The notes under the pieces are model-generated. The model ran no database searches. It had not been told where the DNA came from and saw nothing but the letters and a program-made list of their open reading frames with translations. A stretch of DNA of 64,000 nt from Setoptus koraiensis (lineage: Eukaryota; Animalia; Arthropoda), in assembly GCA_048013815.1 (NCBI GenBank), contig CM106585.1, forward strand, positions 20,894,001 to 20,958,000. Reading direction: 5' to 3'. How positions within the stretch are numbered: the stretch's first letter is position 1; each line of letters opens with the position of its first letter. Made by a program: the position numbers and the translations under genes. Below are positions 194 to 60,035 of the stretch, piece by piece.

Positions 194-1733
194 TGCGGTG
201 GTGATTGCAGCTCGGTCTTGCCAGCCAAATAATCAGGCTGACAAGCGAGCGTGCATGCGAGGATATGTGCGGATATGTGGGCATTTGCGCGGATATTTGG
301 GCATGTGTGTGCGGATATGTGAGCGCATGTGGGTGAGAAAGCAAACAATCAAAATGGGCTTAAGTGTTGATATATATTGCTTGCCAACTGCTGTTCACTG
401 TTTAATAGTCGGCTAAAACTTGCACGCCTCTAAATGGATTCAATTGTTGTGTTATTTATGAACAACCAATCACCTGCACACCGACATACGGCCTCGTATT
501 GGTAGTGGGGCCCCAACACGAGGCCCCACTACCAAAACCCAACACCAAAACCCAATACCAAAACCCAGTACGAGGCCCCGGGTTATGTGGCGTGTGCGAC
601 ACGCTGTCAGACGAATTAACGTTTTGATTAAAAGTGTGCGCCAGCACAGGTGAAAAGCACGCCAGCGATCTAGCCAATGAGTGTGGCACAGACAACGACT
701 TGCTGTTGGCTGTTGCTTGTTACTTGCTGCACAGCTCGTCACAAGTCGCTGTGCCAGACTCATTTCGGCATTCGATATTGGGGCCCCAATAAAACGCGCG
801 CCCAATGATGCGCCGATTCATTTTGGGGCGGCGCACAGCAAACTGGCCCCACTTGATCATGGTCGTTGCTGCGTGCGTCTTGCGAGCCAGTGTGGCCTCT
901 CAATTATTGCCTCACCATTATTGGCGCCGTGTCGCCCCATTGGAACGACCATACAACAGCATGTCTGAGAGAAGTAAATAAATATTGAATTTTAAGATTG
1001 CCCCCCCCCTCACTCACACACACACACACGCACACACACACTGACAGGCACAGACACACACACACGCACAACTGCTGCAGGGGCGAGATATTCGAGCGGT
1101 TTTGGGTTTGGAGCAACTGCGGAACAAGTGGGCTGGAAATTGACGAAATTTCTTGGTTGCTCGGCACACATATTGGCCCCATCATGAACGCGCAAAACTG
1201 TGCGTACTGCTAGCGGGAGCCCCGTCGCCGGGGGCTCTTTTTGGGTCGGTGGGGCCCGGGGTCGTGTTTGGACTGGCTGCCAGCGGTCGCTATTATATAA
1301 TCATGGGCGTTTTGTGGCGCCAGCCCCTCAGCCAGCCAGGATATGTGCTGGCTGAGGGGCGAATTTTGCCGGAACGAGCGCAGAAAACTTGAGTCACTCG
1401 GCTTGTGAGTTTAGTCATTTAGTTGGCAGACGGAATGTTGGCAGCGAGCGAGCCGACAGCAACAACAAAATTGATTAAAAAAAAGCGGATTGACCAAATC
1501 ACACACACACCGTGTTGTCACTGGTCATTTCTATCGTGTCACATTTATTATTCTTTATTCGCGTGCGTGCCACGGATGCGGTGAGATGGATGCGATAAAA
1601 TGAAGTAAAGAATAAGATGAAATAAGATAAAACAATAGAATGGAATGGTATGGAATAAAGACGCAGCAAAATGTGAAAGAAAGTGAGGTTGAAAATTGCA
1701 TTTGTCACGGCGCAAAAAGTGACGAAAACTCAC

Positions 1734-2622
1734 CGAGAATGTTGAGCTTGGTTTGCGTGAGACTGGGGCACTTGGCCCCATAACCGCCGCTATACGTAAC
1801 GACGCACTTGTAGTCGGCGTCGTCCTTCATAGTGGGCCTCTTAATGATTAACTCGTGACAATTTAACGTTGTTGTGTCGCTCATGTTAATTGATTGACAC
1901 CAGGACACTGTCGATTGTCGCTTGTGCCAGTCAAACAAATATAGTGTTTTCGTGTTGCTTGTCGTTCTGTTGTTGTTGGCAGCACTAATTGGCACGGATT
2001 GACGTGAATCGTCGCTGTTTGACTCTAGCGCATCGAGGCCCGTCGATGCTGCGGAAATATCCAGTCTGGTCCATTTGTTGTTGTTTTGGTTGTCTTGTTT
2101 ATACCAGGCAATTATGTAAATATCACTGCATGATCGCTTGAGACCAACTAGGCACGGCACGCGAGCCTCTTGATCGTGCTGATAGGCATTAATTGTGAAC
2201 AGGTTGTTACTATCTACTTGTTGTGCTGGCTGTTTGTTTATTGCTGCTGTCGCTGTCGGCGCAGTTTGTTGCGTAACGGATCTGGCACGTGATTGAATTG
2301 GTTTGATGCTTGCACTATCATTGATTGCGTATTCGAGCTCACTTATCACGGAAATGGCTTGCTGTCGCTTGGCTGGCATGGATTGCTGTGTTGCTGTTGG
2401 GGCGAATTGTTGTTGTTGTTGTTGTTGCTGCTGTTGTTGTTGGTCGTCGTCGTCTTGGCCGACAAACAGGTCGCTCGAGATAAAATCGTCGCTTGTTTGG
2501 GGCCAATCGCTGGCCGGCCCAAACAAACACAAACATTCAAATGACACAACCAACAATAGGCCGGCCGAAATGGCCACTGTTCTCAGACAGCTTCTCAGGT
2601 GATTGTTTGATTGCGGCCTCAT
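1734..2622 (-). CDS. First coding exon of a secreted/cell-surface immunoglobulin-superfamily protein (signal peptide + V-set Ig domain; nephrin/sidestep-like architecture)
   Basis: ATG at 2622; hydrophobic leader (TVAISAGLLLVVSFECLCLF); Ig V-set hallmarks VPC...IIAWYKQ...ELIIKRPTMKDDADYKCVVTY...TKLNIL; ends at a phase-1 GTGAGT donor (intron begins 1733), the usual phase between Ig-domain exons. Downstream exons could not be identified. Confidence 0.75.
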
Positions 2623-10489: not shown

Positions 10490-11040
10490 CATGACACACA
10501 TCGAGCCATTGCTTCTTGGTGTATGTATTTAAATTATTTATTGTGGCAAAACTAACCAATGAAAGTGCACAAATTTTTGCATGCAGGCAGCTGACATGTG
10601 TATCTATCTATGGTCGAAATTTGAGAAACCTGGATCTAGATTGTGATACTCTTTAGATGGTATGAAACGACCAAACGATCAATTTGACTAGCACACCGCA
10701 CTTGGAGCGTGCGCTATAACACATAGTGCGCTATTGCTTCTTGGTGTATGTATTTAAATCAATTATCGTGGCCAAAGACGCATAATTCGGTCATTTTACG
10801 TAATAGCTGAGAAAATTTCAGATCACTGCACCCACGCGTTCAATCAACCTTGTCTGCGGTATTTGACGGGCTTACGTAGTGTGATAACAACGATCTCTGC
10901 AATTTTCATCTACCACACATATATCAATTTATCGATTGTGAATTTTAACTGGTTATCATATACGCCCCCGAATTTTCCATCGATACTCGTCCACTCAAAA
11001 AATTAAGCGCTCGAAATACTGATTTGATCAGTATTACTTG
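10490..11040 (+). mobile_element. HINE 3' portion (5' end not found)
   Basis: subTIR AAAATTAAGCGCT 10999-11011, stem-loop AATACTGA-TTTGA-TCAGTATT, then ACTTG followed by a T tract; body related to 21660-22020 in reverse. Confidence 0.75.
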
Positions 11041-11239
11041 TTTTTTTGATATACGAGTATCCTTGGAATATTGATGCGAGTATGTGACAACATGTCGGAG
11101 ATAAACATGAGAGACCGGAAATTGCCAAATTCATGCTTCGCTACACTCAGGGATGAGCCAGCAATTGTTCTTAGAACTAGTGATCGTGGGTGGGTCAAAA
11201 TTTTGACCCAGTTGGGTCGCAATTTGTGAGGGGTTCGGT

Positions 11240-11900
11240 GGTGACAAATCGAAATTCGAAAATTGAAAATTCGAATTCCTGATGATAGTTTCATCTGCTC
11301 GTTCGATGTTCGATGGTCAGTGTTCCGTGGTCAGTGTTCGATGGTCACAATTCGAACTTCGAAATTCGAAAATTGAATATTCGAATTCCTGATGAGAGTT
11401 TCAGCTGCTCTTTCGATATTCGATGGTCACAATTCGAACTTCGAAATTCGAAAATTGGAAAGTCGAAATTGTAAATTCGAATTTCTGATGAGAGTTTCAT
11501 CTGCTCGTTTGATGTTCGATGGTCAGTGTTCCGTGGTCAGAGTTCTGTGGTGTCAATTCGAAATTCGGAATTCGAAATTGAAAATTCGAATTTGTGATAA
11601 GAGTTACAGCTGCTCGTTCGATGTTTGATGGTCAGTGTTCCGTGGTCAGAGTTCTGTGGTGTCAATTCGAAATTGAAAATTAGAAATTCTGATACGAATT
11701 CTAGGTGCTCGTACAGAGTTCGATGGTAGCATTTCGAAGTTCGATGGTCAAAACTCGACCTTCGAAATTCGAAATTGAAAATTCGAATTTCTGATGATAG
11801 TTTCAGCTGCATTGTCGGACTTCGGTGGTCATAGTTCGATGGTCAGAGTTTGATGGTCAGTGTTCGATGGTCACAATTCGAACTTCGAAATTCGAAATTG
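11240..11900 (+). repeat. TTCGAA-rich tandem array (~85-100-bp units) internal to HINE
   Basis: Repeating TTCGAAATTCGAAATTGAAAATTCGAATTTCTGATGATAGTTTCATCTGCTCGTTCGATGTTCGATGGTCA units. Confidence 0.9.
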
Positions 11901-12041
11901 ATGCACTATAACACAGTGTGCGCCATTGACTAATTGGTGTGTCTAACTTAATTACTTATTAAGACGAAACTGACCATTAGAATCTTAATCAATTTTGTAA
12001 GCAAGCAATCAACATGTGTAGCATGCTGCGATAGAAATTTG

Positions 12042-12904
12042 GGGTGTTGTAGCGAATAGGTCCCCACTCGGAATTCGTTTAAACTTCACACATGGGCTCG
12101 ATAGGGGCCCCATATCACGATTTGAGTGGTCCGGAAGTGCGGAAACTTCCGGTTCCGGAAATTCAAAAATATCGAGATAGAGCTCTGAAAACTCATAATC
12201 AAGTAGACAACACCTAGCGGAGAACGATGAAATCAAAATTGATCTTCCATCACTTCCGGTTCACGAGATATCGGGAATTATTTAAACAACAAGTGTGGAG
12301 GGATGCATGTAGCGGACCCATTCTGTGCATAGACTGAGCAACATCATGTATTGGCTTTTGTTTTAGTCATTACATCTCAGTATTCTTCTTGTTCTGGCCT
12401 ATACACGTCATAACGACGATCCCTACACCCGTGCATGGATGGCAGTCATGTGAGCGGAGGGCTGAGGGCGAAGCCCGAAACCCGAAGCGCTCATCAACCC
12501 TACCCGAAGGGTTCCCGTCGCACGCAGTCGTCGCGTGAGCGACGACGGAGATGTGACGGCCTCCAGAATACGAGGCCGCAGGCCGAGTTCTCAGACACAC
12601 CGCATGTTCAGTCTCGAGCGCAGCGAAGCAATAATTTAGTCACTTCCGGTCTTCCAACCCTTGTAATATCCCTATATCTGGCGAACCGGAAGTCGCACGA
12701 AGCTAAAAATCATGTCATTGTGTTGAGTGTAGCCTAAAATCTCTCTCTGGTGAATTGTAGAGCTCTAGCTTCAACTTTATGTAAAACCGGAACTGGAAGT
12801 TTCCGCATTTCCGGACTACTTTTTCCGTTCTATTGGGGTCAAGGTCGACCTACACCGGAAGTTTCATCAAGATCTGAGTGGGGACCTAATCGCTACAACA
12901 ACCG
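12042..12904 (-). mobile_element. Non-autonomous TIR element B1 (unclassified, 7-8-bp TSD)
   Basis: Ends GGGTGTTGTAGCG / CGCTACAACAACC(G); (G)AAATTTG duplicated at 12035-12041 and 12905-12911; empty site visible in reverse at ~25861-25885; contains the 155-bp core at 12437-12591. Confidence 0.8.
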
Positions 12905-13074
12905 AAATTTGGAGAACTTTTATTTATTCTGTCATCTTTTCGGCTACTCTGATCTGACAGGCATAGATGCTTATCTACGACATGTTGTCACATACTCGCA
13001 TCAATATTCCAACGATACTCGTCTATCCAATAATTTAAGCGCTCGAGATACTTATAGAATCAGTATCACTTGTT

Positions 13075-13335
13075 CATATTCGTCCTTTTTCAGGCGGTCT
13101 TTCAAATCTTCCATTGTAAACAACTCCTCATTTACTCTGGGGCCATCTCTTCCATATACTCATCAACTCCTTTTTTACTTTTTATAATCGACTCCAACAT
13201 CTCTATGTAGGCCACGGCCAATTGATTAGCTTGAGGTGCGGTGAATCGTCTATCTTCCGGCCTCTTCTTCGGCAATTTTTCTCTCAGCTTTTCTCTGGAC
13301 TCTATTACTTTTTGTTCTCTTGTTGTATATTCCAT
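13075..13335 (-). pseudogene. Frameshifted coding fragment between two HINEs
   Basis: MEYTTREQKVIESREKLREKLPKK...VDEYMEEMA continues, after a one-base shift near 13140, as PRVNEELFTMEDLKDRLKKDEYEQ up to the HINE end; family not recognised. Confidence 0.4.
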
Positions 13336-13997
13336 TTTTCTATCTTTTTAGCGCTTAATTTAATTAAGGGCTTATGATGTAGTGTTGTGGGATCCTGAAG
13401 ATCACGCATGAATATCCACGCACGGTATGATGGTGGATCCTAAATTCGTGCATTTTACAGGATATTCACCAATTGTGCTATGGTGATTCACGCGCTGTGT
13501 GCTTGCGAATACTCCGACTTTGTATGCCAGTGAATATTCACGTACCGATTTATTTGTGGATATTCACAGTTTTCGATCTTTAGAGTCACGCGCTGTGTGC
13601 TTGCAAACATTGGCACTAGTAAAATCAGTGCTTAGTGAGTGTGTAGGCTGAAATGTGGGAGGTACACTCAAGCTTAAGACTCAAAAGTTCGTCCACCTCC
13701 CAAACACACATTTACTAGGGAGGTGGATTGAATTTTAATTAAGCTGCTATTGGGGTGGTGATTATGACTACGTTTATTCACGTGACTATGTAATCCTATG
13801 GAGGTTTGACTTAGTCAAATTTGTGAGAATCCTGCTAGAAATTACACATATATTCCTATCCAGGTTCGACTTGGTGTATTATCGCTTCACTCGAAAATAT
13901 TTCGTATGCAATCCTATGAAGATTTGACTAGGTCTAATCTGTGAGGAGTTCGATGGTGACAATTCGAACTCCGAAATTGACAATTCGAATTTCTGAT

Positions 13998-14799
13998 GGG
14001 TTGTTGTAGCGATTAGGTCCCAGCGCCGATCATGATGAAACTTCCGGTACAGGTTCATCTTGACCCGAAACCATCGGAAAAAGTGGTCCGGAAGTGCGGA
14101 AACTTCCGGTTCCGGTTTTACATAAAGTTGAAGCTAGAGCTCTAAAATTCACTAGAGAAAGATTTTAGGCTACGCTTATCACGATGAAATGATTTTCAGC
14201 TCCGTGCGACTTCCGGTTCGCCAGATATGGGGACATTACAAGGGTTGGAAAACCGGAAGTGACCAAATTATTGCTTCGCTGCGCTCGGGGATGGACATGC
14301 GGTGTGTCTGAGAACTCGGCCTGCGGCCTCGTATTCTGGAGGCCGTCACATCTCCGTCGTCGCTCCCGCGACGACTGCGTGCGACGGGAACCCTTCGGGT
14401 AGGGTTGATGAGCGCTTCGGGTATCGGGCTGCGCCCTCTACCCTCCGCTCACATGACTGCAACCCAAACACAGCTGCAAGAAGAGATGCTGCGAGCACGG
14501 GGCACAGAATGGGTCCGCTGACCGCATCCGCACAAACCCGGCCACACCCCAAGATTTGGTTAAACCTCTATATCTTATGAACCGGAAGTCGTAGCGGATT
14601 AATTTTGATCTCATCATGCTCCGCTAGGTGGCGAACATCTGATTCCGAAGTTTCGAAGCTCTATCTCAATATTTTTGTATCTCCGGAACCGGAAGTTTCC
14701 GCACTTCCGGACTACTTAATTCATGATATGGGGCCCCTGCGGGGCCCGTGTGTCAAGTTTCATGATGATCGGCGCTGGGACCTAATCGCAACAACACCC
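13998..14799 (+). mobile_element. Non-autonomous TIR element B2 (unclassified, 7-bp TSD)
   Basis: ~45-bp near-perfect TIRs (GGGTTGTTGTAGCGATTAGGTCCCAGCGCCGATC... / ...GATCGGCGCTGGGACCTAATCGCAACAACACCC) within ~120-bp imperfect arms; TSD TTCTGAT at 13991-13997 and 14800-14806; core at 14311-14465. Confidence 0.9.
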
Positions 14800-15325
14800 T
14801 TCTGATGATTGTCTCAGCTGCTCTGAACGAGTTCGATGGTCGGAGTTTGATGGTCAGTGTTCGATGGTCACAATTCGAACTTCGATATTCGAAATTGAAA
14901 ATTCGAATTCCTGAAAAGAGTTTCAGCCGCTCGTTCGATGTTCGATGGTCAGATCAAGTTCGTGGTCAATTCGAGTTCGATGGTAACATTTCGAACTTCG
15001 AAATTCGAAATTGAAAATTCGAATTTCTGATGATAGTTTCATCTGCTCTGTCGAAGTTCGATGGTCAGAGTTCGGTGGTCAGAGTTCGATGGTCACATTT
15101 CGAACTTCGAAATTCGAAATTGAAAAATTCGAATTTCCGATACGAGTTCCAGGTGCTTGTACAGAGTTCGATGGTCACATTTTGAAGTTCGATGGTCACA
15201 TTTCGAACTTCGAAATTCGAAATTGAAAAATTCGAATTTCTGATGACAGTTCCATCTGTACGTTCGATGTTCTGTGGTCAGTGTTCGATGGTCAATGTTC
15301 GATGGTCACATTTTGAAGTTCGGTG
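14800..15325 (+). repeat. TTCGAA-rich tandem array
   Basis: Same unit as 11240-11900. Confidence 0.9.
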
Positions 15326-15422
15326 GTTAACAGGCTGTCATAAACTCCTTTGAATCCTTCAACAATACTTGTCCACACGAAAAATTAAGCGCTCGAAATA
15401 CTGATTTGATCAGTATTACTTG

Positions 15423-15723
15423 TTGAAACTGTTCTCATCCGGATAAATTCCCGAAACTTTCTAGAGACAGCTAGCAATGTCTAATACACGATCTATGCAA
15501 GTTTAATCAATTTTCTGTTTCCAGTATCGGCGCTATAGGTCATTATTGAGAACGTGTGCCTATACAGTATGTGTGATTTTCGATACTTTTCTCACCAGGA
15601 TAAATTCTTGAAACTTTTTAGAGACAGCTAGCACTTTTCACTACTTAATAAACTGTCCAACTCTCTAAGATCGTTCACTGGAAAAATTAAGCGCTCTTAT
15701 ACTGGTATAATCAGTATAACTTG
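15423..15723 (+). mobile_element. HINE subfamily with variant 3' stem-loop (partial)
   Basis: subTIR 15683-15695 then TTATACTG-GTATAAT-CAGTATAA-CTTG|TT; homologous to 24370-24900. Confidence 0.7.
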
Positions 15724-15838
15724 TTTGTAGGCTTTACTGGATGATAGACTATTCAAAGACTGATCAACGAATCCATTCAAGAAGGATAAGAAAACTAGTG
15801 ATACTGATTGAATCAGTATCTCGAGCGCTTAATTTTTT

Positions 15839-16601
15839 AGCGCTTAATTTTAATTAAGCTGCTATTGGGGTGGTGATGATGACTAGGTTTATTCACGTGA
15901 CTATGTAATCCTATGGAGGTTTGACTTAGTCAAATTTGTGAGAATCCTGCTAGATATTACACATGTATTCCGATGTAGATTTGACTTGGTCGATTATCGC
16001 TTTACTCGAAAATATTTCGTATGCAATCCTATGGAGATTTGACTAGGTCGAATTTGTGAGGAGCTCGGTGGTGACAAATCGAACTTCAAAATTGAAAATT
16101 CGAATTTCTAATGGGAGTTTCAGCTGCTAGTTCGAAGTTAGTGGTTCAGTGTTCTTAGTTCTATGGTCAGAGTTCGATGGTCACAATTCGAAGTTCGGTG
16201 GTAACAATTCGAAATTCGAAATTGAAAATTCGAATTCCTGATGATAGTTTCATCTGCTCGTTCGATGTTCGATTGTCAGTGTTCGGTGGTCGGAGTTCGA
16301 TGGTCACATTTCGAACTTCGAAATTCGAAATTGAAAATTCAAATTTCTGATAAGGGTTTCATCTGCTTCGTTGAAGTTCGATGATCAGATTTCGATAGTG
16401 GTGGGCAATCAACATGTGCATCATGCTGCGATAGAAATTTGAATAACTTGTATTTATTTGGTTGCTCCTCGGCTGCTCTGATCTTACAAGCATAGTTGTT
16501 CATCTCCGACATGTTATTACATACTCCGGTCTTTGTTCCAAGGATACTCGTTTATCCAAAAAATTTAGCGCTCGAGATACTGATTGAATCAGTATCACTT
16601 G
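15839..16601 (+). mobile_element. Complete 763-bp HINE inserted in the T tract of an oppositely oriented HINE
   Basis: 5' AGCGCTTAATTTTAATTAAG, internal TTCGAA repeats, 3' subTIR + GATACTGA-TTGAA-TCAGTATC stem-loop + ACTTG. Joined flanks (AGCGCTTAATTTTTT | TTTTGATAGACGAGTATC) recreate the uninterrupted sequence seen at 25734-25765. Confidence 0.85.
16065..16390 (+). repeat. TTCGAA-rich tandem array
   Basis: Same unit, inside the complete HINE 15839-16601. Confidence 0.85.
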
Positions 16602-16772
16602 TTTTTTTTTGATAGACGAGTATCCTTGGAATATTGATGCGAGTATGTGACAACATGTCGGAGATAAACATCTATGCCTGTCAGATCAGGGTAGCCGGAA
16701 AGATGACAGAATAAATACAAAATCTCCTAATTTCTATCGCAGCATGATACACATGTTGATTGCTTGCGTACG

Positions 16773-17628
16773 GGGTTGTTCTAGCGATTAGGTCCCAGCG
16801 CCGATTATGATGAAACTTCCGGTACAGGTTCATCTTGACCCAAAACCATCAGGAAAAGTGGTCCGGAAGTGCGGAAACTTCCGGTTCCGGTTTTACCTTA
16901 AGTTGCTTCTAGAGAGTTGAAACTCATCAGAATGACGTTCCAGATGACGATCAACACAATGACATAAGTTTTAGCTCTTTACCACTTCCGGTTCTCTGGT
17001 TATAGCGATATCCCAAGAGTTGAGAGACCGGAAGTTGCCAAATTCATGCTTCGCTACACTCAGGGATGAGCCTGCAATTGTTCTTAGAACTCGGCCTTCG
17101 GCCTCGTATTCTGGAGGCCGTCACATCTCCGTCGTCGCTCCCGCGACGACTGCGTGCGACGGGAACCCTTCGGGTAGGGTTGATGAGCGCTTCGGGTATC
17201 GGGCTGCGCCCTCTACCCTCCGCTCACATGACTGCAATCCACCCACAAATGAAGGGGCGAATAAAAAATAAGGATGAGACAAGTAGGAACAACTGAATTA
17301 CATGCTAATACATGGTGTTGCGCAGTCTGTGCACAGTATGGGCCCGCTTGCCGCAACCGCACAGGCCCGGCCGCACCTCTAATTTCAGTTGAACCTTGAT
17401 ATCTAGCAAACCGGAAGTGATACCGGATTGATTTAGATTCCATCCTGCTCCGCTGAAGGTCATCTACCTGATTCTCAATGTTCAGAGCTCTAGCTTAAAC
17501 TTCATGTAAAACCGGAACCAGAAGTTTCCGCACTTCCGGACCACCTAATCCATGATGTGGGGCCCCTGCGGGGCCCGTGTGTCAAGTTTCGTGATGATCG
17601 GCGCTGGGACCTAATCGCAAGAACACCC
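16773..17628 (+). mobile_element. Non-autonomous TIR element B3 (unclassified, 7-bp TSD)
   Basis: TSD GCGTACG at 16766-16772 and 17629-17635; empty site TGCTTGCGTACGGAATT present at ~25901; core at 17086-17240. Confidence 0.9.
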
Positions 17629-17673
17629 GCGTACGGAATTCAGCAAGATTCCTCAATCCGTAACCTAGTTAGA

Positions 17674-18173
17674 NNNNNNNNNNNNNNNNNNNNNNNNNNN
17701 NNNNNNNNNNNNNNNNNNNNNNNNNNNNNNNNNNNNNNNNNNNNNNNNNNNNNNNNNNNNNNNNNNNNNNNNNNNNNNNNNNNNNNNNNNNNNNNNNNNN
17801 NNNNNNNNNNNNNNNNNNNNNNNNNNNNNNNNNNNNNNNNNNNNNNNNNNNNNNNNNNNNNNNNNNNNNNNNNNNNNNNNNNNNNNNNNNNNNNNNNNNN
17901 NNNNNNNNNNNNNNNNNNNNNNNNNNNNNNNNNNNNNNNNNNNNNNNNNNNNNNNNNNNNNNNNNNNNNNNNNNNNNNNNNNNNNNNNNNNNNNNNNNNN
18001 NNNNNNNNNNNNNNNNNNNNNNNNNNNNNNNNNNNNNNNNNNNNNNNNNNNNNNNNNNNNNNNNNNNNNNNNNNNNNNNNNNNNNNNNNNNNNNNNNNNN
18101 NNNNNNNNNNNNNNNNNNNNNNNNNNNNNNNNNNNNNNNNNNNNNNNNNNNNNNNNNNNNNNNNNNNNNNNNN
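17674..18173. other. Assembly gap (500 N)
   Basis: Run of N; repeats either side may be collapsed or mis-joined. Confidence 1.
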
Positions 18174-19043
18174 TTGTTGTAGCGATTAGGTCCCAGCGCC
18201 GATCATTATGAAACTTCCGGTACAGGTTCATCTTGACCCAAAACCATCGGAAAAAGTGGTCCGGAAGTGCGGAAACTTTCGGTTCCGGTTTTACCTAAAG
18301 TTGCTTGTAGAGAGTTGAAACTCACGAGAATGACGTTCTTGATGACGATTAACAGAATGACATAATTTTCAGCACTGCATCACTTCCGGTTCTCTAGTTA
18401 TAGCGATATCTCTAGAATTGAGAGGCAGGAAGTTGCCGAATTCAGGCTTCGCTACACCCGGGGATGAGCATACAATTGTTCTAAGAACTCGGCCTGCGGC
18501 CTCGTATTCTGGAGGCCGTCACATCTCCGTCGTCGCTCCCGCGACGACTGCGTGCGACGGGAACCCTTCGGGTAGGGTTGATGAGCGCTTCGGGTATCGG
18601 GCTGCGCCCTCTACCCTCCGCTCACATGACTGCAATCCAAACACAGCTGCAGGCGGGAAGAGTGAACGAACCACCCAACAAAGAATGAGAAAGAAGAGAT
18701 TAAATGACTGAAACAGACGTGAATACAGAGTGCAGCGAGCACGAGGCACAGAATGGGTCCGCTGACCGCAACCGCACAGGCCCGGCCACACCCCAAAATT
18801 TGGTTTAACCTCTGTATCTTATGAACCGGAAGTTAAAGCGGATTAATTTTGATCTCATCATGCTCCGCTAGGTAGCAACCATCTGATTCTGAAGTTTCGA
18901 AGCTCTATCTCAATATTTTTGAATCTCCGGAACCGGAAGTTTCCGCACTTCCGGACTACTCAATTCATAACATGGGGCCCTTGCGGGGCCTGTGTGCCAA
19001 GTTTCATGATGATCGGCGCTGGGACCTAATCGCAACAACACCC
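18174..19043 (+). mobile_element. TIR element B4 (left terminus abuts assembly gap)
   Basis: Same arms as B2/B3; core at 18484-18638. Confidence 0.85.
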
Positions 19044-19385
19044 CAACGAGACACCAATCCGCCTTTTGTCTCTATTTTTGGTGGAGGGTGTGTTTGGTTT
19101 TTTTCATTTTTGGTCATCGGCGTTCGACTTGATTTAGTTGTATTATATATCATTTTGAAGCTCTTTTATAGAGGTATTTCTATGAGCTGTCAAATCTCTG
19201 GGCGGACATTCCTGGGGCCCCACAAATTGGGGCCAGAGTTTTCTTCTGATTTTTATCAGGACTTGGATTCGAGTCTAGGGAAAAATTATACCCTCCATAG
19301 ATGCGTCTTTTAGAGATCCATCCAACAAAACCAAGAACGTGTCTCTATAACAAGAGACTGGGTCTCCAGAGGCCCCCAAAGCGAA

Positions 19386-20725
19386 CAAGTAATACTGATC
19401 AAATCAGTATTTCGAGCGCTTAATTTTTTGTGTGGACAAGTATTGTTGAAGGATTCAAAGGAGTTTATGACAACCTGTTAACCACCGAACTTCAAAATGT
19501 GACCATCGAACATTGACCATCGAACATCGAACGAGCAGATGGAAATTTCATCAGAAATTCGAATTTTCAATTTCGAATTTCTAAGTTCGAAATGTGACCA
19601 TCGAACATTGACCACCGAACTTCAAATTGTGACCATCGAACTATGACAAGCACCTGGAACTGTCATCAGAAATTCGAATTTTCAATTTCGAAGTTCGAAA
19701 TGTGACCATCGAACATTGACCACCGAACTCTGACCACCGAACTTCGACAGAGCCGATGAAACTATCATCAGAAATTCGAATTTTCAATTTTCGAATTTCG
19801 AATTGTGACCATCGAACACTGACCATCGAACACTGACCATCGAACTCTGACCATCGAACTTCGACAGAGCAGATGGAACTATCATCAGGAATTCGAATTT
19901 TCAATTTCGAATTTCGAATTGTGACCATCGAACACTGACCATCGAACTCTGACCATCGAACATCGAACGAGCAGATGAAACTCTCATCAGAAATTCGAAT
20001 TTTCAATTTTCGAATTTCGAATTGTGACCATCGAACACTGACCATCGAACACTGACCATCGAACTCTGACCATCGAACTCCGACAGAGCAGATGAAACTA
20101 TCATCAGAAATTCGAATTTTCAATTTTCGAATTTCGAATTGTGACCATCGAACACTGACCATCGAACACTGATCATCGAACATCGAACGAGCAGATGGAA
20201 ATGTCATCAGAAATTCGAATTTTCAATTTCGAATTTCGAAGTTCGAAATGTGACCATCGAACTCTGACCATCGAACTTCGAACTCTGACCATCGAACTTC
20301 GAACTCTGACCATCGAACATCGAACGAGCACCTGAAACTATCATCAGAAATTCGAATTGTCAATTTCGAAGTTCGAAATGTCACCACCGAACTCCTACCA
20401 TGGAACTAAGAAAACTGAACCACTAACTTTGGACGATCAGCTAAAACTCTTATTAGAAATTCGAATTTTCAATTTTGAAGTTCGATTTGTCACCACCGAA
20501 CTGCCCACAAATGTGACCTAGTCAAATCTCCATAGAATTGCATACGAAATATTTTCGAGTGAAGGGATAATAGACCAAGTCGAATCTACATCGGAATACA
20601 TGTGTAATGTCAAGCAGGATTCTCACAAATTTGACTAAGTCAAACCTCCATAGGATTACATAGTCACGTGAATAAACGTAGTCATAATCACCACCCCAAG
20701 AGCAGCTTAATTAAAATTAAGCGCT
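19386..20725 (-). mobile_element. Complete ~1.34-kb HINE with expanded TTCGAA array
   Basis: Reverse 3' end CAAGT-AATACTGA-TCAAA-TCAGTATT-TCG-AGCGCTTAATTTT (19386-19428); reverse 5' end CTTAATTAAAATTAAGCGCT ending 20725; A tracts on both flanks. Confidence 0.85.
19490..20490 (-). repeat. TTCGAA-rich tandem array (largest)
   Basis: Reverse-oriented units; gives the repetitive ORF 19641-20207. Confidence 0.9.
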
Positions 20726-20847
20726 AAAAACAGCAACGCCGCCTAGTGGCTAAACGTCGAACTGAAGGATGATGCAATTGGTATATTCGTGATTGGGAGG
20801 CTCTTCCGATCACGAAAATACTATATACATGTATGTCAGACCAGTTT

Positions 20848-21580
20848 GGGGTGTACTGGAGAATAGCGCCGCACTCCAAATTGGATGAAACTCGACACAC
20901 AGGGCCCGCAGGGCCCCCTGACAATTATTTTAGTAGTCCGGAAGTGCGGAAACTTCCGGTTCCGGTTTTACCTAAACTTGCAGATACAGCTTTGAAACTT
21001 AACATACAGCCTAATGTGACTGTGCTAAGCACGTAGAAGTCATTATGATATCTGTTGGACTTCCGGTTTCTGAGATAATGAGCGATAGTAATGGAATTCG
21101 ACAGTAGACAGTCTGTTGCACAACCTACTTTCGTGTATGGATTGCAGTCATGTGAGCGGAGGGTAGAGGGCGCAGCCCGATACCCGAAGCGCTCATCAAC
21201 CCTACCCGAAGGGTTCCCGTCGCACGCAGTCGTCGCGGGAGCGACGACGGAGATGTGACGGCCTCCAAATTACGAGGCCGCAGGCCGAGTTCTCAGAACA
21301 ATCGCAGGCTCATGTTCGAGTGCAGCGAAGCTCAAATTTGTAGGAAGGCTGTTGTTGGCCAAACTCTAAGCCTTTTTATTGAATATCTTCTTACCCAGAT
21401 CGGTCTGGAATAAGTTTGTCTACCAAAAAATAGTGAAGATACCCTAACAAATACCCCAGAAACCGCTAGCGGTCGTCGGGTATCAAGAAACGCCTACCGT
21501 GCGGTAACCCGGTTATCTCAGGAACTAGAAATTTCCGCACTTCCGGATTACCTATCTCAGTACCAGGGTACGATACCCTA
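20848..21580 (-). mobile_element. Diverged TIR element B5
   Basis: Degenerate arms with the CCGGAAGTGCGGAAACTTCCGG motif at ~20938; core at 21139-21293. Confidence 0.7.
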
Positions 21581-22020
21581 CCCAAAAACACCCAAAATAC
21601 CTCGAAACAAGTAATACTGATTATGTCAGTATCTCGAGCGCTCAATTTTTTGGATGGACAAATATGATAGGAATATAGAAGCGAGTATGTAACGACATGT
21701 CGGAGATAACCATCTTGATAGATACACCGATAGGCAATGGCAAGTTTTTCAAATTTCTACCATAGTTCGATGATCATGTCAACTGCCTGCATGCCGAAAT
21801 TGGTGCAGTTCTAGCGGTCAATATTGCCACAATGAACAAATTTGCGAGACACAACAAGCTGGCAATGGCGCACTATGTGTTATATCGCGCGACCTGTGTG
21901 CGGTGTGCTATGCGAATGAGTCGTTTGGTCTGTTCAAAGCAGCTATAGAGTGTGACAAAATAAATCAAAATGTCTCAGATTTTCAATATAGCTAGATACA
22001 CATGTTGACTGCTTGCGTAC

Positions 22021-23464
22021 AAAATTTGGTTAATTTATGATACCCAATTTCGTCACAATTAATAATTTTGCGAGACACAAAAAATCAGCAATGGCGTACT
22101 ATGTGTTATATCGCGCATCATGCATGCATGTAGCTATAAATAACATACATACAGCCATGATGAATATTCTGGATTGCTCAAAATAAGACGATCAACTCTT
22201 GAATATCTAAATATAACAGAGTCGAGGACATCAAATATAACGATCTGCTATTTTATTTTTGACAATAAACATACGGTTAAGGAATTCATATTTAGGTTGT
22301 TGTAGCGAATAGTGCCCCGCCCCGATTTTGATGAAACTTCCGGTACGGGTTCATCTTGACCCAAAACCATCGGGAAAAGTGGTCCGGAAGTGCGGAAACT
22401 TCCGGTTCCGGTTTTACAAAAAGTTGAATCTAGAGCTCTGAAATTCACTACAGAGACGTTTCAAGCTACGCTGAACACGATGACATAATTTTCAGCTCTG
22501 TGCGACTTCCGGTTTTCGAGATATAGAGATATTACTAGGGTTAGAAGACCGGAAGTGACCAAATTATTGCTTCGCTGCGCTCGGGGATGCACATGCGGTG
22601 TGTCTGAGAACTCGGCCTGCGGCCTCGTATTCTGGAGGCCGTCACATCTCCGTCGTCGCTCCCGCGACGACTGCGTGCGACGGGAACCCTTCGGGTAGGG
22701 TTGATGAGCGCTTCGGGTATCGGGCTTCGCCCTCTACCCTCCGCTCACATGACTGCAATCCATACACGAATGATAGAAAAAGAACGAAATGGGGACGCAT
22801 GGAAGGCTCTGAACATATATCCGGCACAGAAAAGGAGCTGCGCATCCTTAAGTGTTGAACAGAATGGGCCTGATAGCGCACGTATTTGTTCGTGCGCGCG
22901 GGTATTCCGTCCCGTCTACGCCCCTGCAGCGGTTTCATCCAGATATCTCGTCAACCGGAAGTGAGACAAATTTGAAATTGACGTTATCGTACTCTGCGTG
23001 CTCTGATTCACATGTATAGTGAGTTTCAAGCCTGTATCTCATTTTTTTTGTAAAACCGGAACCGGAAGTTTCCGCACTTCCGGACCACCGAGGTTATTGT
23101 TTTTGGGCCCTACGGGCCCCGTGTGTGAAGTTTCATCGAAATCTGACTGGGGCATATTCGCTACACACCCACTGTCATTTATTACTTAACAAAATTTGGT
23201 GAATTTGTGATACCCAATTTAGTCACAATTAATAATTTTGCGAGACACAAAAAATCATCAATGGCGCACTATGTGTTATATCGCGCACCATGCATGTATG
23301 TAGCTATAAATAACATACATACAGCCATGATGAATATTCTGGATTGCTCATGATAAGACGATCAACTCTTGAATATCTAAATATAACAGAGTCGAGGACA
23401 TCAAATATAACGATCTGCTATTTTATTTTTGACAATAAACATACGGTTAAGGAATTCATATTTA
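22021..23464 (+). repeat. 274-bp direct repeat (22021-22294 and 23191-23464) bracketing TIR element B6
   Basis: Near-identical copies from AAAATTTGGT to GGAATTCATATTTA. Confidence 0.9.
22295..23170 (+). mobile_element. TIR element B6
   Basis: Both arms present, no clear TSD; core at 22607-22761. Confidence 0.8.
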
Positions 23465-24100
23465 GAGGTAATATATTCAGACCATTCTCATCCTGTTTGA
23501 CAGCTGCATTACCTCAGACGATGTTCAGTACGATTGGTGATGATAAATTCAAATTGTGCGGAGCTGTCAGTAAACTAACAAATTGTTTTGTGATTTAAAT
23601 AATATGTAACAACTGGTATATCTTCTGATCGATCTTTCGCGCAACACTCATGTTGATAAACGTGTCATTTTCTAAGCGTTTCATTGTACTAAATCCGTCT
23701 AGTTTTTGCACTCCTAACTTCCCCAGTGCTAAATTCAATTTGTAAACAGCTAGTATGATCGCATGCTAATTTTTACTAGTTAGCGTCTCAGCCTCTACTG
23801 TATAATTTATTTCTAAAAACTCCGCCTCCTAGCCTTACGTGTGCTAGATTTTAAGAGTCAACATTTTAGCGTTTCATTGTGCTAAATCTGTCTAGTTTTT
23901 GCACTCCTAACTTCCCCAGTGCTAAATTCAATTTGTAAACAGCTAGTATTATCGCATGCTAATTTTTACTAGTTAGCGTCTCAGCCTTCACTGTATAATT
24001 GTTTCCTAATGACTCCGCCTCCTAGCTTTCTCTGCACTAACAAACTAGATAGATTCACAACAATGAAGCCTACAAAATGCTCACCAACGCCTCCGCTGTG
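23400..24100 (-). pseudogene. Decayed ORF with in-frame stops and a ~193-bp tandem duplication
   Basis: One frame reads EAEFLEINYTVEAETLTSKN*HAIILAVYKLNLALGKLGVQKLDGFSTMKRLENDTFINMSVARKIDQKIYQLLHII*ITKQFVSLL...; duplication units start at 23675 and 23868. Confidence 0.4.
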
Positions 24101-24369
24101 CTAATTTTTTCTAGAAGGAGAAAAGCACTGATTTGTTCTGTCACGTGAATAAACGTAGTCATAATCACCACCCCAATAGCTACTTAATTAAAATTAAGCG
24201 CTAAAAATTAGTCCGGAAGCCAGGAAACTTCCGGTTCCGGGTTGACATAAAGTTAGAGTATCTAAACATTACACATGTTAACTCTATGGAGATTTGAGTC
24301 TCTCAATTTCTGTGTTGAAGTATCTAAGCCATTTCCGGGCACGAAGGGTAATTAAGTACGTGGCATTTT

Positions 24370-24900
24370 TGAAACTGTTCTCACCAGGATAAATTCTTGA
24401 AACTTTCTAGAGAAAGCTAGCACCGTCTCACAGAGCACTTAATTTTAATTAGGTAAATCATGTAAATATCTTGATATCTGAACATGTTCCCACCTATCCG
24501 TTTTGACGATACTGCGTGTGTGTGTGGTGCATGTTGCTCGCAACAATCTGTGCTAGTATGATCAGCCATCAATAGGCCGTTTTCGAGACAGAAAGAAATT
24601 TCGGATGACGGATGTCATGTATAGTCATCGATTTCTAAACATGTTTCCACCTATCCGTTTCGATGATGCTCAGTCAACTTATAATCAATTTTCTTTCTCT
24701 AGTATTGGCGCTATAGGCCATTATTGAGAACATGTGCCTATACAGTATGTGTGATTTTCAATACTGTCCTCACTAGGATAAATTCTTGAAACTTTCTAGA
24801 GACAGCAAGCACATATCACTACTTAATGAACTGTCCAAACCTCTAGATCGTTCACTGGAAAAATTAAGCGCTCTTATACTGGTATAATCAGTATAACTTG
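24370..24900 (+). mobile_element. HINE subfamily with variant 3' stem-loop
   Basis: subTIR 24860-24872, TTATACTG-GTATAAT-CAGTATAA-CTTG|TTTTT; internal direct repeat shared with 15423-15723. Confidence 0.7.
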
Positions 24901-25070
24901 TTTTTGCCTCACTAGTTACACACGGTGAGCAGGCGAACCGCAACAGGGTGACAGTCGCACCATTCGAACGCCGGCTAGACCGACGACTAATCAGCGCGAT
25001 GAATCAATGTTATAGTTAAATTAATGAAAATATTGTTACCAATGGAATCAACGGTTTTGTGGGCACAATT

Positions 25071-25393
25071 TTATCGACGCTTGTCTTGCAATGTAAGAGT
25101 GATCAGGGCGCTGAGCGTTTCACGCGGCGCGCAAAGGTGAGGAACACATCCTCGAGTCGAACACATCCTGGTGTCGCTAATGAGATATCTGAATTTGACT
25201 GCGGGCAGTGCGGCCTCTCGTTCCGCTTCCATCCATTCGAACAACTGCGAGCGCGTGATGAGGTCGTCGGTGACGCGATACACAACAGAATAAATGTTGA
25301 CATAATCCAGCGATATTGATGATGATCTTGCCATCAGATTGTGCGTCAATTGTTGCTGCAAATCGGCCACTAGCTTGTTGGCGCCAGTTGTTT
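25071..25393 (-). pseudogene. Open ~105-codon coding-like fragment truncated at its 5' end by TIR element B7
   Basis: ...SSSISLDYVNIYSVVYRVTDDLITRSQLFEWMEAEREAALPAVKFRYLISDTRMC...LQDKRR*; family not recognised. Confidence 0.35.
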
Positions 25394-25640
25394 GGGTGTT
25401 GTAGCGATTAATGCCCCAGTCTGATTTCAATGAAACTTCACACATGGGGTCCGTAGGGTCCAAAAATGATAACCTTGGTGGTCCGGAAGTGCGGAAACTT
25501 CCGGTTCCGGTTTTACATAAAAATTGAGATACGGACTTGAAACACTCTACACATCTAGATTTAAGCACGCAGGGTACGATACAGTAGATCTCAAGCCTGA
25601 ACAACTTCCGGCTCACAAGATATTCGGTGGAAATCGCTGC
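25394..25640 (-). mobile_element. Truncated TIR element B7 (one arm, no core)
   Basis: GGGTGTTGTAGCGATT terminus and CCGGAAGTGCGGAAACTTCCGGTTCCGGTTTTAC arm. Confidence 0.7.
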
Positions 25641-25704
25641 AAGGGCGGTGACGGGACGGAATATCGACCGAGTGCGTGCGCTAGCAGGCCCGTACTGATC
25701 AAAT

Positions 25705-26565
25705 CAAGTGATACTGATTCTATCAGTATCTCAAGCGCTTAATTTTTTGGATAGACGAGTATCGTTGGAATTTGGATGCGAGTATGTGACAACATGTCGG
25801 AAATGAACATCCATGCCTGTCAGATCAGAGTAGCCGAGAAGATGACAGAATGAATACAAGTTCTCCAAATTTCTATCGCAGCATGATACACATGTGGATT
25901 GCTTGCGTACGGAATTTAGTAAGATTCTTATGGTCAGTTTCGCCACAATGAGTAATTTAGTTAGACACACCAATTAGTCAATGGTGCACACTTTGTGACC
26001 ATCGAACTTCGAATTGTGACCATCGAACTTCGACAGAGCAGATGAAACTATCGTCAGAAAATCGAATTTTCAATTTCGAATTTCGAAATTCGAATTTTCA
26101 ATTTCGAATTTCGAAATTCGAATTATGACCCTCGAACTTCGACCATCGACCATCGAACACCAAACTACATCTACCGAACATGAAACAGTGATACGATTAT
26201 CTATTTCCAATTTCGAACTCTGACTGTCGAACTTAGAACACTGACCAACGAACTCCGAACGAGCAGCTGGAACTTTCATCAGGAATTCGAATTTTCAATT
26301 CCGAATCTCGATGTTCGAATTGTCACCACCGAACTTCTCACAAATTCGACCAAGTTAAATCTACATAGCATTGCATACGAAATATTTCCGAGTGAAGCGA
26401 AAATAGACTAAGTCGAATCTCCATAAGAATACATGTGTAATGTTGAGGAGAATTTCAGGATTTTCACAAATTTGACTAAGTCAGACCTCCATAGGATTAC
26501 ATAGTCACGTGAATAGATTAGCAATAAACACCAAACCAATAGCAACTTAATTAAAATTAAGCGCT
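25705..26565 (-). mobile_element. Complete ~860-bp HINE
   Basis: Reverse 3' end 25705-25746, TTCGAA repeats 25995-26340, reverse 5' end ending 26565 followed by an A tract. Confidence 0.8.
25995..26340 (-). repeat. TTCGAA-rich tandem array (diverged)
   Basis: Same unit family, reverse. Confidence 0.8.
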
Positions 26566-26579
26566 AAAAAAAGCCTGCG

Positions 26580-27129
26580 CAACTTCCGGTTCTCGAGATT
26601 CTCGCAGTTGGATGTGCAGCTCCACGATGAACAGTCCGTTCTTCTACTTACGGTCGTGTATGGATTGCAGTCATGTGAGCGGAGGGCAGAGGGAGCAGCC
26701 CGATACCCGAAGCGCTCATCAACCCTACCCGAAGGGTTCCCGCCGCACGCAGTCGTCGCGGGAGCGACGACGGAGATGTGACGGCCTCCAGACTACGAGG
26801 CCGCAGGCCGAGTTCTCAGACCCATCACATACTCATTCCTGAGCAAAGCGGAGCTCCAATTTCTCCGCTTCCGGTCTTCTTACGTCAAATATATCTGTAT
26901 ATCTAGAAAAACGGAAGTCGCACAGAGCTGAAAATTATACCATCATAACCAGCGTGGTCAGTAACGTCTCTCTAGTGAGTTTCAGACCTCTAGCTTTAAC
27001 TTCATGTAGAATCGGAACCGGAAGTTTCCGCACTTCCGGACCACTTTTCCTGATGGTTTTGGGTCAAGATGAACCTGTACCGGAAGTTTCATCAATATCG
27101 GAGCGGGGCACTAATCGCTACAACAACCC
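26580..27129 (-). mobile_element. Truncated TIR element B8
   Basis: Core at 26662-26816; arm ending CTAATCGCTACAACAACCC at 27129. Confidence 0.75.
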
Positions 27130-30100
27130 ATTTTTTTTATCTCCGGAACCGGAAGTTTCCGCACTTTTGGACCACGCCATGTGGAGCCCCTGCGCAGCCT
27201 GTGTGTGGAGTTTCATTGAATTCTGAGTGAGGAAAATCCACCATTTTTTCCAAAATTACTAAAGAACCAGGAGGTCTAGCCATACCAAATTTTCACACGA
27301 TTAACATACACACATTAGTCATCGTCTGAACTAGAATTAGCCATATTGTACAAAAAATAAATTTTTCATTTGACTTCAAATAAACAAAATTTTCATTTTC
27401 AAATTTTTCAGTTTTATAAATTTAATTTTCTCTGTCGGATCATTCTAATTCTAGTTCACACGATAGAAGCATCTGAGATGATTCATAATGAGAGGTCAGA
27501 TTTACTCGGACCGAAGGTATTGATCAGCTATTGCGTAAACAGTAGACATATACCCGATGCGGACCGACCCGACTTACTGCGCATGCTCAGAGAAGGGAGG
27601 GGCGGAACCCGAGGGGTCCCCACCATCAGATAGAGCACAGTCTGATGTGTCTGCCAGTAAAAGAATTGTGTGTGAGAGACAACCCTGTTGTGAGTAAACC
27701 CTGTTTGAATGCGCACGATAATTCAGGTTGCGTTCAACCCTGAGAAGTCGGATACCCCCTTAAGCCATCTGCGCATGGCTTCCGTAGTTTAGTGTAACGG
27801 CCTGTATTTACAGACACACTTATTAAGGGTGTTTCAATCGAAGGGCGAATTTTCATTCAATAAACTTAATACTCAAACATCTTAACTCGCTTTATGTCAA
27901 ATGCTGCGCACGTGGGGAGCCGAGCGAGTCTATTTCAAGGCGACTTCTCTCGCTCTGTAGTGATACAAACTAGCCAAGATGCGACAGCTACAAGCTTTCG
28001 CCAAACACTACGCAAGTTGCCTTTGACAAGTATGTGTGTTGGAGGCTGTCGATAACAAAAAGATAATAAAAAGATAAAACAGTCAGCAGACAGGTATCCA
28101 GACAAGAGCATGCTTTGTCGTTTCCGGACAACAACAACGACATCCGCTCAGTTAGTTTTTTGCCGCTATGTGTGATAACTAATTTTCAACTAAGTTTTGT
28201 GTGCAGCAACACAGTTTCATTAATACATGTTTTATGTACATACGTAACGTCTCCGGCTGTGGTAATGAGATTAAATCCATGCAAGCCAAGCAGACAACAA
28301 AACTTGTAGACAAACTTGACGCGTTCCCTACTTATCCGCTTGTCCACCTTACACGAGCCCTTCTTTTGCCGGCTTCGGCGAGCTTGTGCTTATCGGCAAA
28401 ACGGCAAGCTTTGCAAGTAGAACAAGGAAGAAACAAAAAAAGTAAACTTTTCACTACAATGTTTCTCTTTGTTTGTTGCTTGTTAATTCAATGATGAGGC
28501 GCGACAACAGATAACTCCGATAACGACCATTCACAACAGCTATGCACACTGCCAACAATATTGTAACCTTGTCCGCTTGCAGTGAAATGCCGTTCGTTTT
28601 GCTCGCCGGAGACGGTTGTTGGTAATTATGCGCGCTTCTTATCTTATCAGCATCAGCATTAACATCAGCATTAATATTAACATTGGTTAGCTGCATCGTG
28701 ACACATGATTGTGTGAATCGTTTGCCCATAATCACACCGTTGATGACATTATTATCTTGGAAAAGTAGAACTGTCGCAAAAATTGAATCTACAAATCGAC
28801 TGGCAACTGTCAGATATTGTGTCAGATGTTGTGTCTGGCTAATAGTTCGGATAGTGTCGGCCTAGAGGACAGACTGGCCACGACAGCTCGTTCAATGGTC
28901 TCGAACATGCAGATATCACATATAGAGATTACACTTTGTTATTTCGTATATTATTTGTTGTCCTTGTCGATCATCGCGACTCGTTGACAGCTCGCCTTGC
29001 TCTGTAACTCAAAACTTGTCACCACGGACACTATAAATTAGTTTGTGGTAAGTTTATTTGCGCAACAAGTCTTCGTTTGGTTAGTTAGTTCAGTGTCCGG
29101 ATGAAATTGGCGACAATCTCGCGTCGTTATTCGCTATGTTTGGTTGTAAGTTTAGTGGGCAGTTAATTGATTTCCGCCCAGGGTTCAATTATCAATCACA
29201 AACAACGTGTCATGCCTGCGAATACTCTCTGACATTGTTGTTTTTGTTATCGTGCATGTCTCACGGATGCATGCGATGCAAATTATCATTTATTGAAATT
29301 ACCATAATCACCATTACCAATTAGCTGTTTTGAGATAGTCGCTAACACATAATCAACTGCTTTGAGTATAATGTGAACGCGTGACAACATTCATGGGCGC
29401 CAAAGAGACCTTGTGGCAGATAAAAAATATCAAGCACTCAGTGAGCCCTGGCACGATATTTGCACCGATTTCGCTTGTGTTGCTGTTGGCAATTTGCACC
29501 ATCGGAGCAGACTTATTATTGGCCCAAATGGCAGTGGTGGCATTGAAATCGGACATTGGAGCTCGTATAGTTGTAGTACATTTGTTGTCAGTATATGCAA
29601 CGATGTGTTGGTCGGATAAAAACTGCTCGTTGTGATACTACTAACTGTTATTTTTGCTCGCTACTATTTGCCATTAATGGCCCACTAGTTAGATGGCGCC
29701 TTGGGCTACCATATAACTATTATCAGCGAGCTAACTAGTATTAGCGTGTTAATAGTGGTGCTATTAGGCTTGTCGTCGTGTGTTCATGTGACACTATGCA
29801 ATGCAAATTGGTTATGGTGCATGTAGAGGGGTAACGACGAGGCACACGACAAGCATACGCGACAAAACGACCAATGAATGCCCACATAATTGGTCTATTT
29901 TTTCAGCACTATTTGCCCAAAATGAAAAGAGAGACAGAGCGATATGTATATTTTGGCTGCTGCTGCTGCTGCAAAGTGACGAATATAGTTACAGCGGTAG
30001 ATTATGTATTAGAGAGAGATTCAATATACTTGCGATGGAGACTTTAATCATAACCCAATTGCTTTATGATGCGCAAATTATCCCATTCAACTGTTAAGCT

Positions 30101-60001: not shown

Positions 60002-60035
<34 letters not shown>

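Follow-up and report, generated by a model that had tools for sequence, protein, structure and literature searches.

The window analysed here, 64,000 nucleotides of contig CM106585.1 of Setoptus koraiensis, carries seven copies of a GC-rich core block, each inside a non-autonomous element of a DNA transposon family with terminal inverted repeats (TIRs). The initial annotation had described this core as 155 bp long, present seven times and free of insertions and deletions. All seven copies were found again where it had placed them, at 12437, 21139 and 26662 on the plus strand and at 14311, 17086, 18484 and 22607 on the minus strand, and their oriented alignment was free of gaps. The seven elements (E1 to E7, Table 1), together with all 34 occurrences of the motif ACTTCCGGT, lie within 15 kb of the window (12-27 kb), with none of either in the other 49 kb. 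This part of the window is a dense repeat nest with a GC content of 38-44%, against 46-55% in the gene-bearing parts.

The core was far better conserved than the element around it, as had been noticed before, and this held both for the window copies and for read contigs of the probable source sample. Pairwise identity over the 155 bp averaged 97.4% (range 94.8-99.4%, seven copies), whereas the mean outside the core was 71% in the left arm, 80% in the right arm and about 50% in the variable stretch directly 5' of the core. In each of the 21 pairs the core was less diverged than the closer arm (Fisher P 0.04 to 1e-15); for the closest pair, E2 and E4, the left arms differed at 17 of 247 positions (6.9%) and the core blocks at 3 of 171 (1.8%). 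The core of E4 equals the seven-copy majority at every column of the 155 bp. The length of 155 bp is correct as described, but the conserved block is somewhat longer, about 172 bp (for example 14306-14476). At its limits identity dropped over only a few bases from about 99% to no more than 75%; the two edges coincide in all pairs, and contigs of two other sequencing runs lost their match at these edges as well. Because all pairs have the same edges, a functional boundary fits better than random conversion tracts. A profile search of the window for older, decayed cores returned none besides the seven.

The GC content of the core was 62-64% and it was rich in CpG, against 40-45% GC in the surrounding region. 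The ratio of observed to expected CpG was about 1.0 in the core, arms, genes, repeats and whole window, so that CpG decay was rejected as the source of arm divergence. By the same ratio, this genome region shows no sign of germline CpG methylation decay. A coding role for the open frame that runs through the core is unlikely, since every core position is conserved and an open frame is expected by chance in GC-rich DNA; a protein-space search with this frame gave nothing.

The elements are 800-870 bp long, non-autonomous and without coding capacity, and no transposase or coding copy of the family was found in the 64-kb window. Their termini are GGGTGTTG...CAACAACC or, written as a terminal inverted pair, GGGTGTTG / GGTTGTTG; these outer termini occurred ten times in the window and pair into elements. 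Perfect target site duplications (TSDs) of 8 bp flank E1, E2 and E3, and since all three are different, these elements are independent insertions and not segmental copies. A TSD of 7 bp with GGG...CCC termini was rejected in favour of 8 bp, because the eighth base is duplicated beyond the right-hand copy in all three elements. Matching TSDs were looked for in the flanks of E5, E6 and E7 and none was found, nor was the TSD exchange expected from an inversion between E6 and E7.

The two arms, of about 250 bp each, are diverged inverted repeats of each other with 53-65% identity (nhmmer E 1e-26 to 1e-46). They have only three symmetric conserved blocks, probably bound by the transposase: the outer TIR (about 45 bp), a palindromic block of 34 bp around CCGGAAGTGCGGAAACTTCCGG (15 matches in the window) and a ACTTCCGGTT...AGATAT block. 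The interior that separates the arms consists of a variable stretch rich in indels, the core of about 172 bp and a linker of about 60 bp with a GCGAAGC mini-hairpin. The variable stretch keeps a common GCGGACCCATTCTGTGC-like motif and differs mostly by indels; that of E2 is the E4 version with a deletion.

Table 1. Elements carrying the core, solitary pieces of the family and the assembly gap, in window coordinates.
Feature	Position	Strand	Description	Basis
E1	12042-12903	+	complete; 8-bp TSD GAAATTTG; core block 12426-12596	outer TIR matches, flanks, whole-element profile match
E2	13999-14799	-	complete; 8-bp TSD TTCTGATG (window orientation); core block 14306-14476; variable stretch partly deleted	outer TIR matches, flanks, profile match
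E3	16774-17628	-	complete; 8-bp TSD GCGTACGG (window orientation); core block 17081-17251	TIR matches, flanks, profile match
E4	18174-19043	-	right terminus cut by gap; core block 18479-18649	TIR matches, profile match
E5	20848-21599 (about)	+	separate subfamily; core 21128-21298; ends more diverged	
E6	22295-23170 (about)	-	core block 22602-22772; outer TIR more diverged	profile match
E7	25394-27128	+	core block 26651-26821	TIR and profile matches
Fragment without core	11086-11178	-	segment just 3' of core (GCGAAGC and ACTTCCGGT-like site)	
Solitary arm fragment	27131-27234	-	outer part and inner repeat block; adjoins E7	
Solitary inner repeat block	24204-24278	+	diverged	
Assembly gap (N)	17674-18173		abuts E4 right terminus; TIR match begins with NN at 18172	

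The abundance of the family was assessed by aligning Logan contigs of the probable source sample to E2, and 14,396 contigs matched. Summed contig depth is not copy number and was therefore used only as a relative measure; with contigs at 80% likeness or better, the summed word depth was 120,000-152,000 over the core, 18,000-49,000 over the inner repeat blocks, 6,000-8,000 over the outer TIRs and 600-3,000 in most arm bins, which places the core about 50-200 times above the arm bins. Single listed contigs of this sample had a depth of 5-14. The core is the most abundant module of the family, and its absolute copy number is large. Among the variant positions listed (share of at least 10%), about 40 fell in the arms and none in the core. 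Three other runs gave one or two contigs each at a depth of 2-6. Two of these contigs span the core with 2-3 differences and continue into flanks identical to window subfamilies, one flank being an exact match to the variable stretch of E6. We take these contigs to be traces of this species or of one very close to it, picked up owing to the abundance of the repeat, and not independent cross-species conservation. One RNA-seq run held a contig with part of the core at a depth of 3, possibly from DNA carry-over.

Near-identity of this kind could also be produced by the assembly itself, through repeat collapse or a consensus imposed on multi-mapping reads during polishing. A scaffold gap stands exactly at an element terminus, a sign that the assembler struggled with the repeat. 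The right terminus of E4 coincides with the edge of the gap, whose Ns replace its first two bases, and for this reason the TSD of E4, the 1398-bp spacing between the 17086 and 18484 copies and the local order are not reliable; open reading frames (ORFs) that span the gap are artefacts. The gap touches no core; the distance to the nearest core block is 423 nt on the 17086 side and 306 nt on the 18484 side. Private differences are retained in each core copy, a distinct perfect TSD flanks each of three elements, and the core recurs, beside other flanks, in contigs of independent runs. For these reasons we hold an assembly or polishing artefact to be extremely improbable.

The initial annotation had described four hairpins in the core (H1 to H4), and they were reproduced by folding. 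The strand that reads as plus in the 21139 copy folded at -78.7 kcal/mol with RNA parameters (z -4.55) and at z -3.80 with DNA parameters, and for the opposite strand z was -3.12 (RNA) and -3.06 (DNA). As both strands fold better than shuffled sequence, it is mostly the identity of the loops that supports a strand bias. Perfect C(GNA)G triloop hairpins with a stem of 4 bp or more occur three times in the core, versus 0.027 expected, and three were reached in 0 of 20,000 first-order Markov simulations; triloops of the complementary type, which would belong to the other strand, number zero. An 8-bp stem of the core is capped by a GGGA loop, a tetraloop of GNRA type. All GNA and GNRA loops, the tandem G.A loops and two invariant G.T wobbles of the core are on one and the same strand, which is also the strand of the GNA loops in the linker mini-hairpin and in a GGGCCCC-GCA-GGGGCCC hairpin of the left arm. 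Folded in single-stranded form, the entire E3 element doubles back on its arms, while H1 and H3 are retained at the apex.

At the right end of E5 (21560-21599) a GGGTA-CGA-TACCC mini-hairpin is followed by TACCC, an arrangement that was also observed in loose contig ends of run X20. Its GGGTA/TACCC stem is identical to the middle stem of H1, and TACCC-type motifs may be a recognition unit that is used both at the element end and in the core.

The substitutions among the core copies are few and unevenly placed. The loop variants had been named correctly before, and the GNRA variant stays within its class (GGGA/GTGA). Correct as well was the double change in the 12437 copy, where an A-T pair has become T-A (alignment columns 38 and 54); next to it, a T>C change breaks one pair. 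Loops received 8 of the 15 substitution events (P = 6e-4), and 5 of the 15 hit the free middle loop base, which makes up 5 of 159 positions (P = 7e-5). No change was seen at the loop G or A in any of the seven copies. Changes of the GCA>GAA type arose in three separate loops, and all four allele combinations occur at core sites 37 and 46, which lie within 9 bp; this indicates recurrent change at the free loop base or exchange between copies.

Exchange is evident in the arms. By their left arms the elements group as E2 with E4, then E3, E1, then E6 with E7, then E5; by their right arms E1, E2, E6 and E7 group together, then E3 with E4, then E5. The arms of E2 are a mosaic, with a left arm of E4 type (93%) and a right arm of E1/E6 type (88%), and the right arm of E4 pairs with that of E3 (90%). 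E5 has the usual left inner repeat and core and a right arm that is unrelated beyond core position +202. The conflicting arm genealogies and the standard core beside a foreign arm in E5 point to frequent recombination or template switching between subfamilies, for which the shared centre is the likely junction. The core might then have no function of its own and be a young module, spread through older and diverged subfamilies by ectopic gene conversion or template switching, that has stayed uniform since no other tract is alike enough for recombination to continue. Such a history would agree with the mosaic combinations of E2 and E4, with the four allele combinations at sites 37 and 46, and with the position of all seven copies inside 15 kb, which favours local exchange. 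Conversion tracts should end variably, however, and the block edges are the same in 21 of 21 pairs and in contigs of other runs. Neutral homogenisation does not predict substitutions that avoid stems and the loop G and A, and a sweep through many subfamilies would itself imply an advantage, so that we regard a core shaped by recombination alone as rather unlikely.

The folding may instead belong to a transcript, with the core as the template of a structured RNA (scaffold, decoy or guide-type) that helps the element or an autonomous partner. It is the RNA parameters under which the favoured strand folds best, and the GNRA-class tetraloop with its GNRA variant (GGGA/GUGA), the tandem G.A internal loops and the conserved G.U pairs would suit an RNA, as would the contig of the RNA-seq run, were its depth of 3 not open to DNA carry-over. 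A comparison with described RNAs had been proposed earlier; with the gathering thresholds, Rfam 15 matched nothing in the window, and with E up to 10 it matched nothing that touches the core in 20800-21700, so the core matches no family there. No conserved promoter or terminator was seen, and by sequence inspection only, the core held no convincing match to a hammerhead core, C/D boxes, A/B boxes of RNA polymerase III (Pol III), or initiator and downstream promoter elements. The predicted multiloop closing stem is broken in two copies. Moreover, C-G-closed GNA triloops are known for their unusual stability in DNA rather than RNA. An RNA role for the core is, in our judgement, unlikely.

Other identities were also looked for. 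Exact-pattern scans of virus, metagenome and prokaryote genome collections for motifs of the core and the inner repeats gave 0 matches each, and a full-text search of papers with 13-20-mers of the TIR, inner repeat and core returned a single unrelated primer match. An introner or splice-site idea, based on the pyrimidine-rich tract and TTGCAG just 5' of the core, was rejected, as there is no matching donor and the copies lie outside genes.

The arms are rich in ACTTCCGGT, whose 34 occurrences in the window, all within the cluster, compare with 0.3 expected. These ETS-type sites and the GC-rich core might be binding platforms, in which case the host would retain the copies for a regulatory or chromatin function, as promoters, insulators or sites related to replication. 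The excess of sites and the GC- and CpG-richness of the core relative to its surroundings are in line with this. Host selection would hardly be able to hold a module of such depth near identity, though, and the seven copies are in a repeat nest and not beside genes, while the arms with the ETS-like sites diverge freely; retention by the host therefore seems highly improbable.

The reading that we favour, tentatively and with a little less than even confidence, is that selection among element lineages maintains the core as a cis-acting module, which works via hairpins on one strand. Selection for a cis module is suggested by an interior block that is more conserved and more abundant than the termini, has fixed edges and is common to subfamilies with different arms, and hairpin function on one strand by substitutions that spare the stems and the loop G and A. 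Only lineages with an intact core would keep multiplying, and the core would serve mobilisation or copy-number gain of the element. It would most likely act through clustered DNA hairpins specific to one strand (C-GNA-G triloops, a GNRA-type tetraloop and tandem G.A pairs), extruded in single-stranded or supercoiled DNA and recognised by a host factor or the transposase in the manner of an internal transposition enhancer; one possibility is a loading platform for either of them on extruded or replicating DNA. From these patterns and by analogy, we infer that the hairpins may form in vivo, may be read by a protein and would benefit the element.

Several points weigh against a selected hairpin module. 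Covariation was not significant: with one double change among the seven copies, 73 of 500 shuffles reached the observed score, and 44 of 52 core base pairs are invariant, which is too little variation for a covariation test. Pairs of the favoured strand are disrupted by four stem changes, of which three give C.A there and would be G.U on the other strand; moreover, both strands fold better than shuffles. The loop tests are post hoc: the seven copies that they use, all from one 15-kb cluster, are those in which the pattern was first noticed. The mosaic arms show that recombination in the family is frequent, the depth of the core is a sum over contigs and not a copy number, and the count of variant positions had 14 further rows beyond those listed. 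To our knowledge, a TSD-generating DDE transposon has no single-stranded step that requires such hairpins, and neither an autonomous partner nor a transposase is present in the window.

In a stronger form, amplification of the TSD-generating TIR transposon would be driven by the core as a strand-specifically folded element, either a site in single-stranded DNA (ssDNA) for loading or priming or a scaffold RNA carried by the element. This we consider quite doubtful; if true, a eukaryotic cut-and-paste family would rely on a single-stranded or RNA-assisted step, which is undescribed for such elements. The initial annotation had proposed a selected folded ssDNA (or RNA) element, and of this the conservation, the C(GNA)G enrichment, the strand bias and the concentration of substitutions on the middle loop base are supported, whereas covariation, a choice between ssDNA and RNA, and any particular function (origin, ribozyme or non-coding RNA) are not.

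The window also contains satellite arrays with a unit of about 109 bp (also scored as 103-130 and 219 bp), at 11227-11946, 14800-15322, 16056-16393, 19486-20502 and 25989-26370. The 109-bp unit is built from 7-, 14- and 21-bp TCGAAC/TGACCA sub-repeats. E2 is inserted beside one array and another lies inside E7, whose left arm is split by about 770 bp of another repeat including the satellite (about 25727-26492); the two repeat families are thus mutually nested. A second repeat unit, a AATACTGAT...ATCAGTATT palindrome followed by TCGAGCGCTTAATTTTTTG, was found at 10945-11042, 12977-13074, 15327-15424, 16506-16603 and 25705-25873, and seems to be the end of the satellite-bearing element that hosts the transposon insertions. 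At 23675-24026 a 193-bp unit stands in tandem (1.8 copies, 93% match), unrelated to the core family. Elsewhere in the window, a single-ORF trypsin-like serine protease is encoded at 50171-51085 on the minus strand. An ORF of 892 amino acids at 59313-61991 on the plus strand, probably cut by an intron, begins a rhodopsin-type seven-transmembrane domain (7tm_1) in its last 75 residues or so, and an ORF at 1705-2622 on the minus strand has weak I-set/TSP_C similarity. These genes mark the genome as that of an animal, probably an arthropod, and the closest protein clusters likewise come from arthropods.

The initial annotation had left the family as an unclassified TIR transposon. It can be narrowed to one with an 8-bp TSD, GG termini and long diverged inverted-repeat arms, although the superfamily is not settled without a transposase. 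An autonomous Merlin partner would encode a DDE transposase of the IS1595/IS1016 type and a P-type one a THAP transposase, and the window has a coding copy of neither. Transposons of the hAT type have an 8-bp TSD and short TIRs that begin with YARNG; the TSD length fits, but hAT was rejected, as the termini here are GGGTG/GGTTG and the arms are long. Helitron and Helentron elements (no TSD, 5'-TC...CTRR-3' ends, a 3' hairpin) are excluded by the TSDs and TIRs. Dada elements are without TIRs and target specific small-RNA genes with a TSD of 6-7 bp (PMC3706591); they are excluded by clear TIRs and by three unrelated 8-bp TSDs that lie in repeats.

Merlin elements are characterised, according to PMC8101967 (citing Feschotte 2004), by a TSD of 8-9 bp, TIRs of 24-462 bp and a terminal 5'-GG. 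The perfect 8-bp TSDs of E1, E2 and E3 agree with this, as do the TIR length and terminal GG observed here, whereas a central domain more conserved than the TIRs turned up in no Merlin description within the literature searched. Mutator-like elements (MULEs) have long TIRs and a TSD of usually 8-10 bp (range 4-10 bp in PMC10045372), with which the 8-bp TSD and inverted arms of about 250 bp are compatible; the window has no transposase to decide. By its structure the family looks like a Merlin-like or Mutator-like non-autonomous transposon. Galileo (P superfamily) and Tetris, as described in PMC3573991 and PMC4079207, share with it long, internally repetitive inverted arms, mosaic copies and an association with satellites. 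The TSD of Galileo is 7 bp, however (7-8 bp in the P superfamily), against 8 bp here, the arms here are only 53-65% alike, and a conserved unique central core is not a hallmark of Galileo or Tetris. The family is a Merlin- or MULE-like long-TIR non-autonomous transposon with an unusual, structured and ultra-conserved central domain.

In non-autonomous TIR transposons the ends are normally conserved and the interior drifts. Here this order is reversed, with a near-frozen interior block of 172 bp and termini and arms that diverge and recombine. Folded ssDNA recognition sites are known from integron attC, the ends of IS200/IS605, the Helitron 3' hairpin, origins of ssDNA phages and GCGAAGC-type mini-hairpins, and the core resembles them in its strand-specific hairpins, GNA loops and conserved unpaired bases. 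These sites are used by HUH or tyrosine recombinases or by primases, however, and have no 8-bp TSD; no such enzyme or nick site is in evidence here. The internal activation sequence of phage Mu is an internal cis element that boosts assembly of the transposition complex. In its proposed role the core would resemble it, as a cis element in the interior and separate from the ends; the enhancer of Mu, however, is bound as a duplex, in contrast to the hairpin cluster here.

A further parallel is found in the central domains of short interspersed elements (SINEs), such as CORE, V, Deu and others, in which a short block is near-unchanged across subfamilies that otherwise differ and whose function is unexplained. 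Like them, the core is a short central block common to subfamilies with differing remaining parts. SINEs are Pol III-transcribed retroposons, whereas the family described here is a DNA transposon with TIRs and TSDs in which no A/B boxes were recognised. Should the core prove to be no more than a tract homogenised by recombination, it would still illustrate cleanly how modules are shuffled in a foldback-like family. If it is a cis-acting module, it offers a tractable case, with a short motif, a testable hairpin logic and many natural variants, that could show how families resembling miniature inverted-repeat transposable elements reach very high copy number, and if that module acts in amplification it would be the DNA-transposon counterpart of the unexplained core domains of SINEs.

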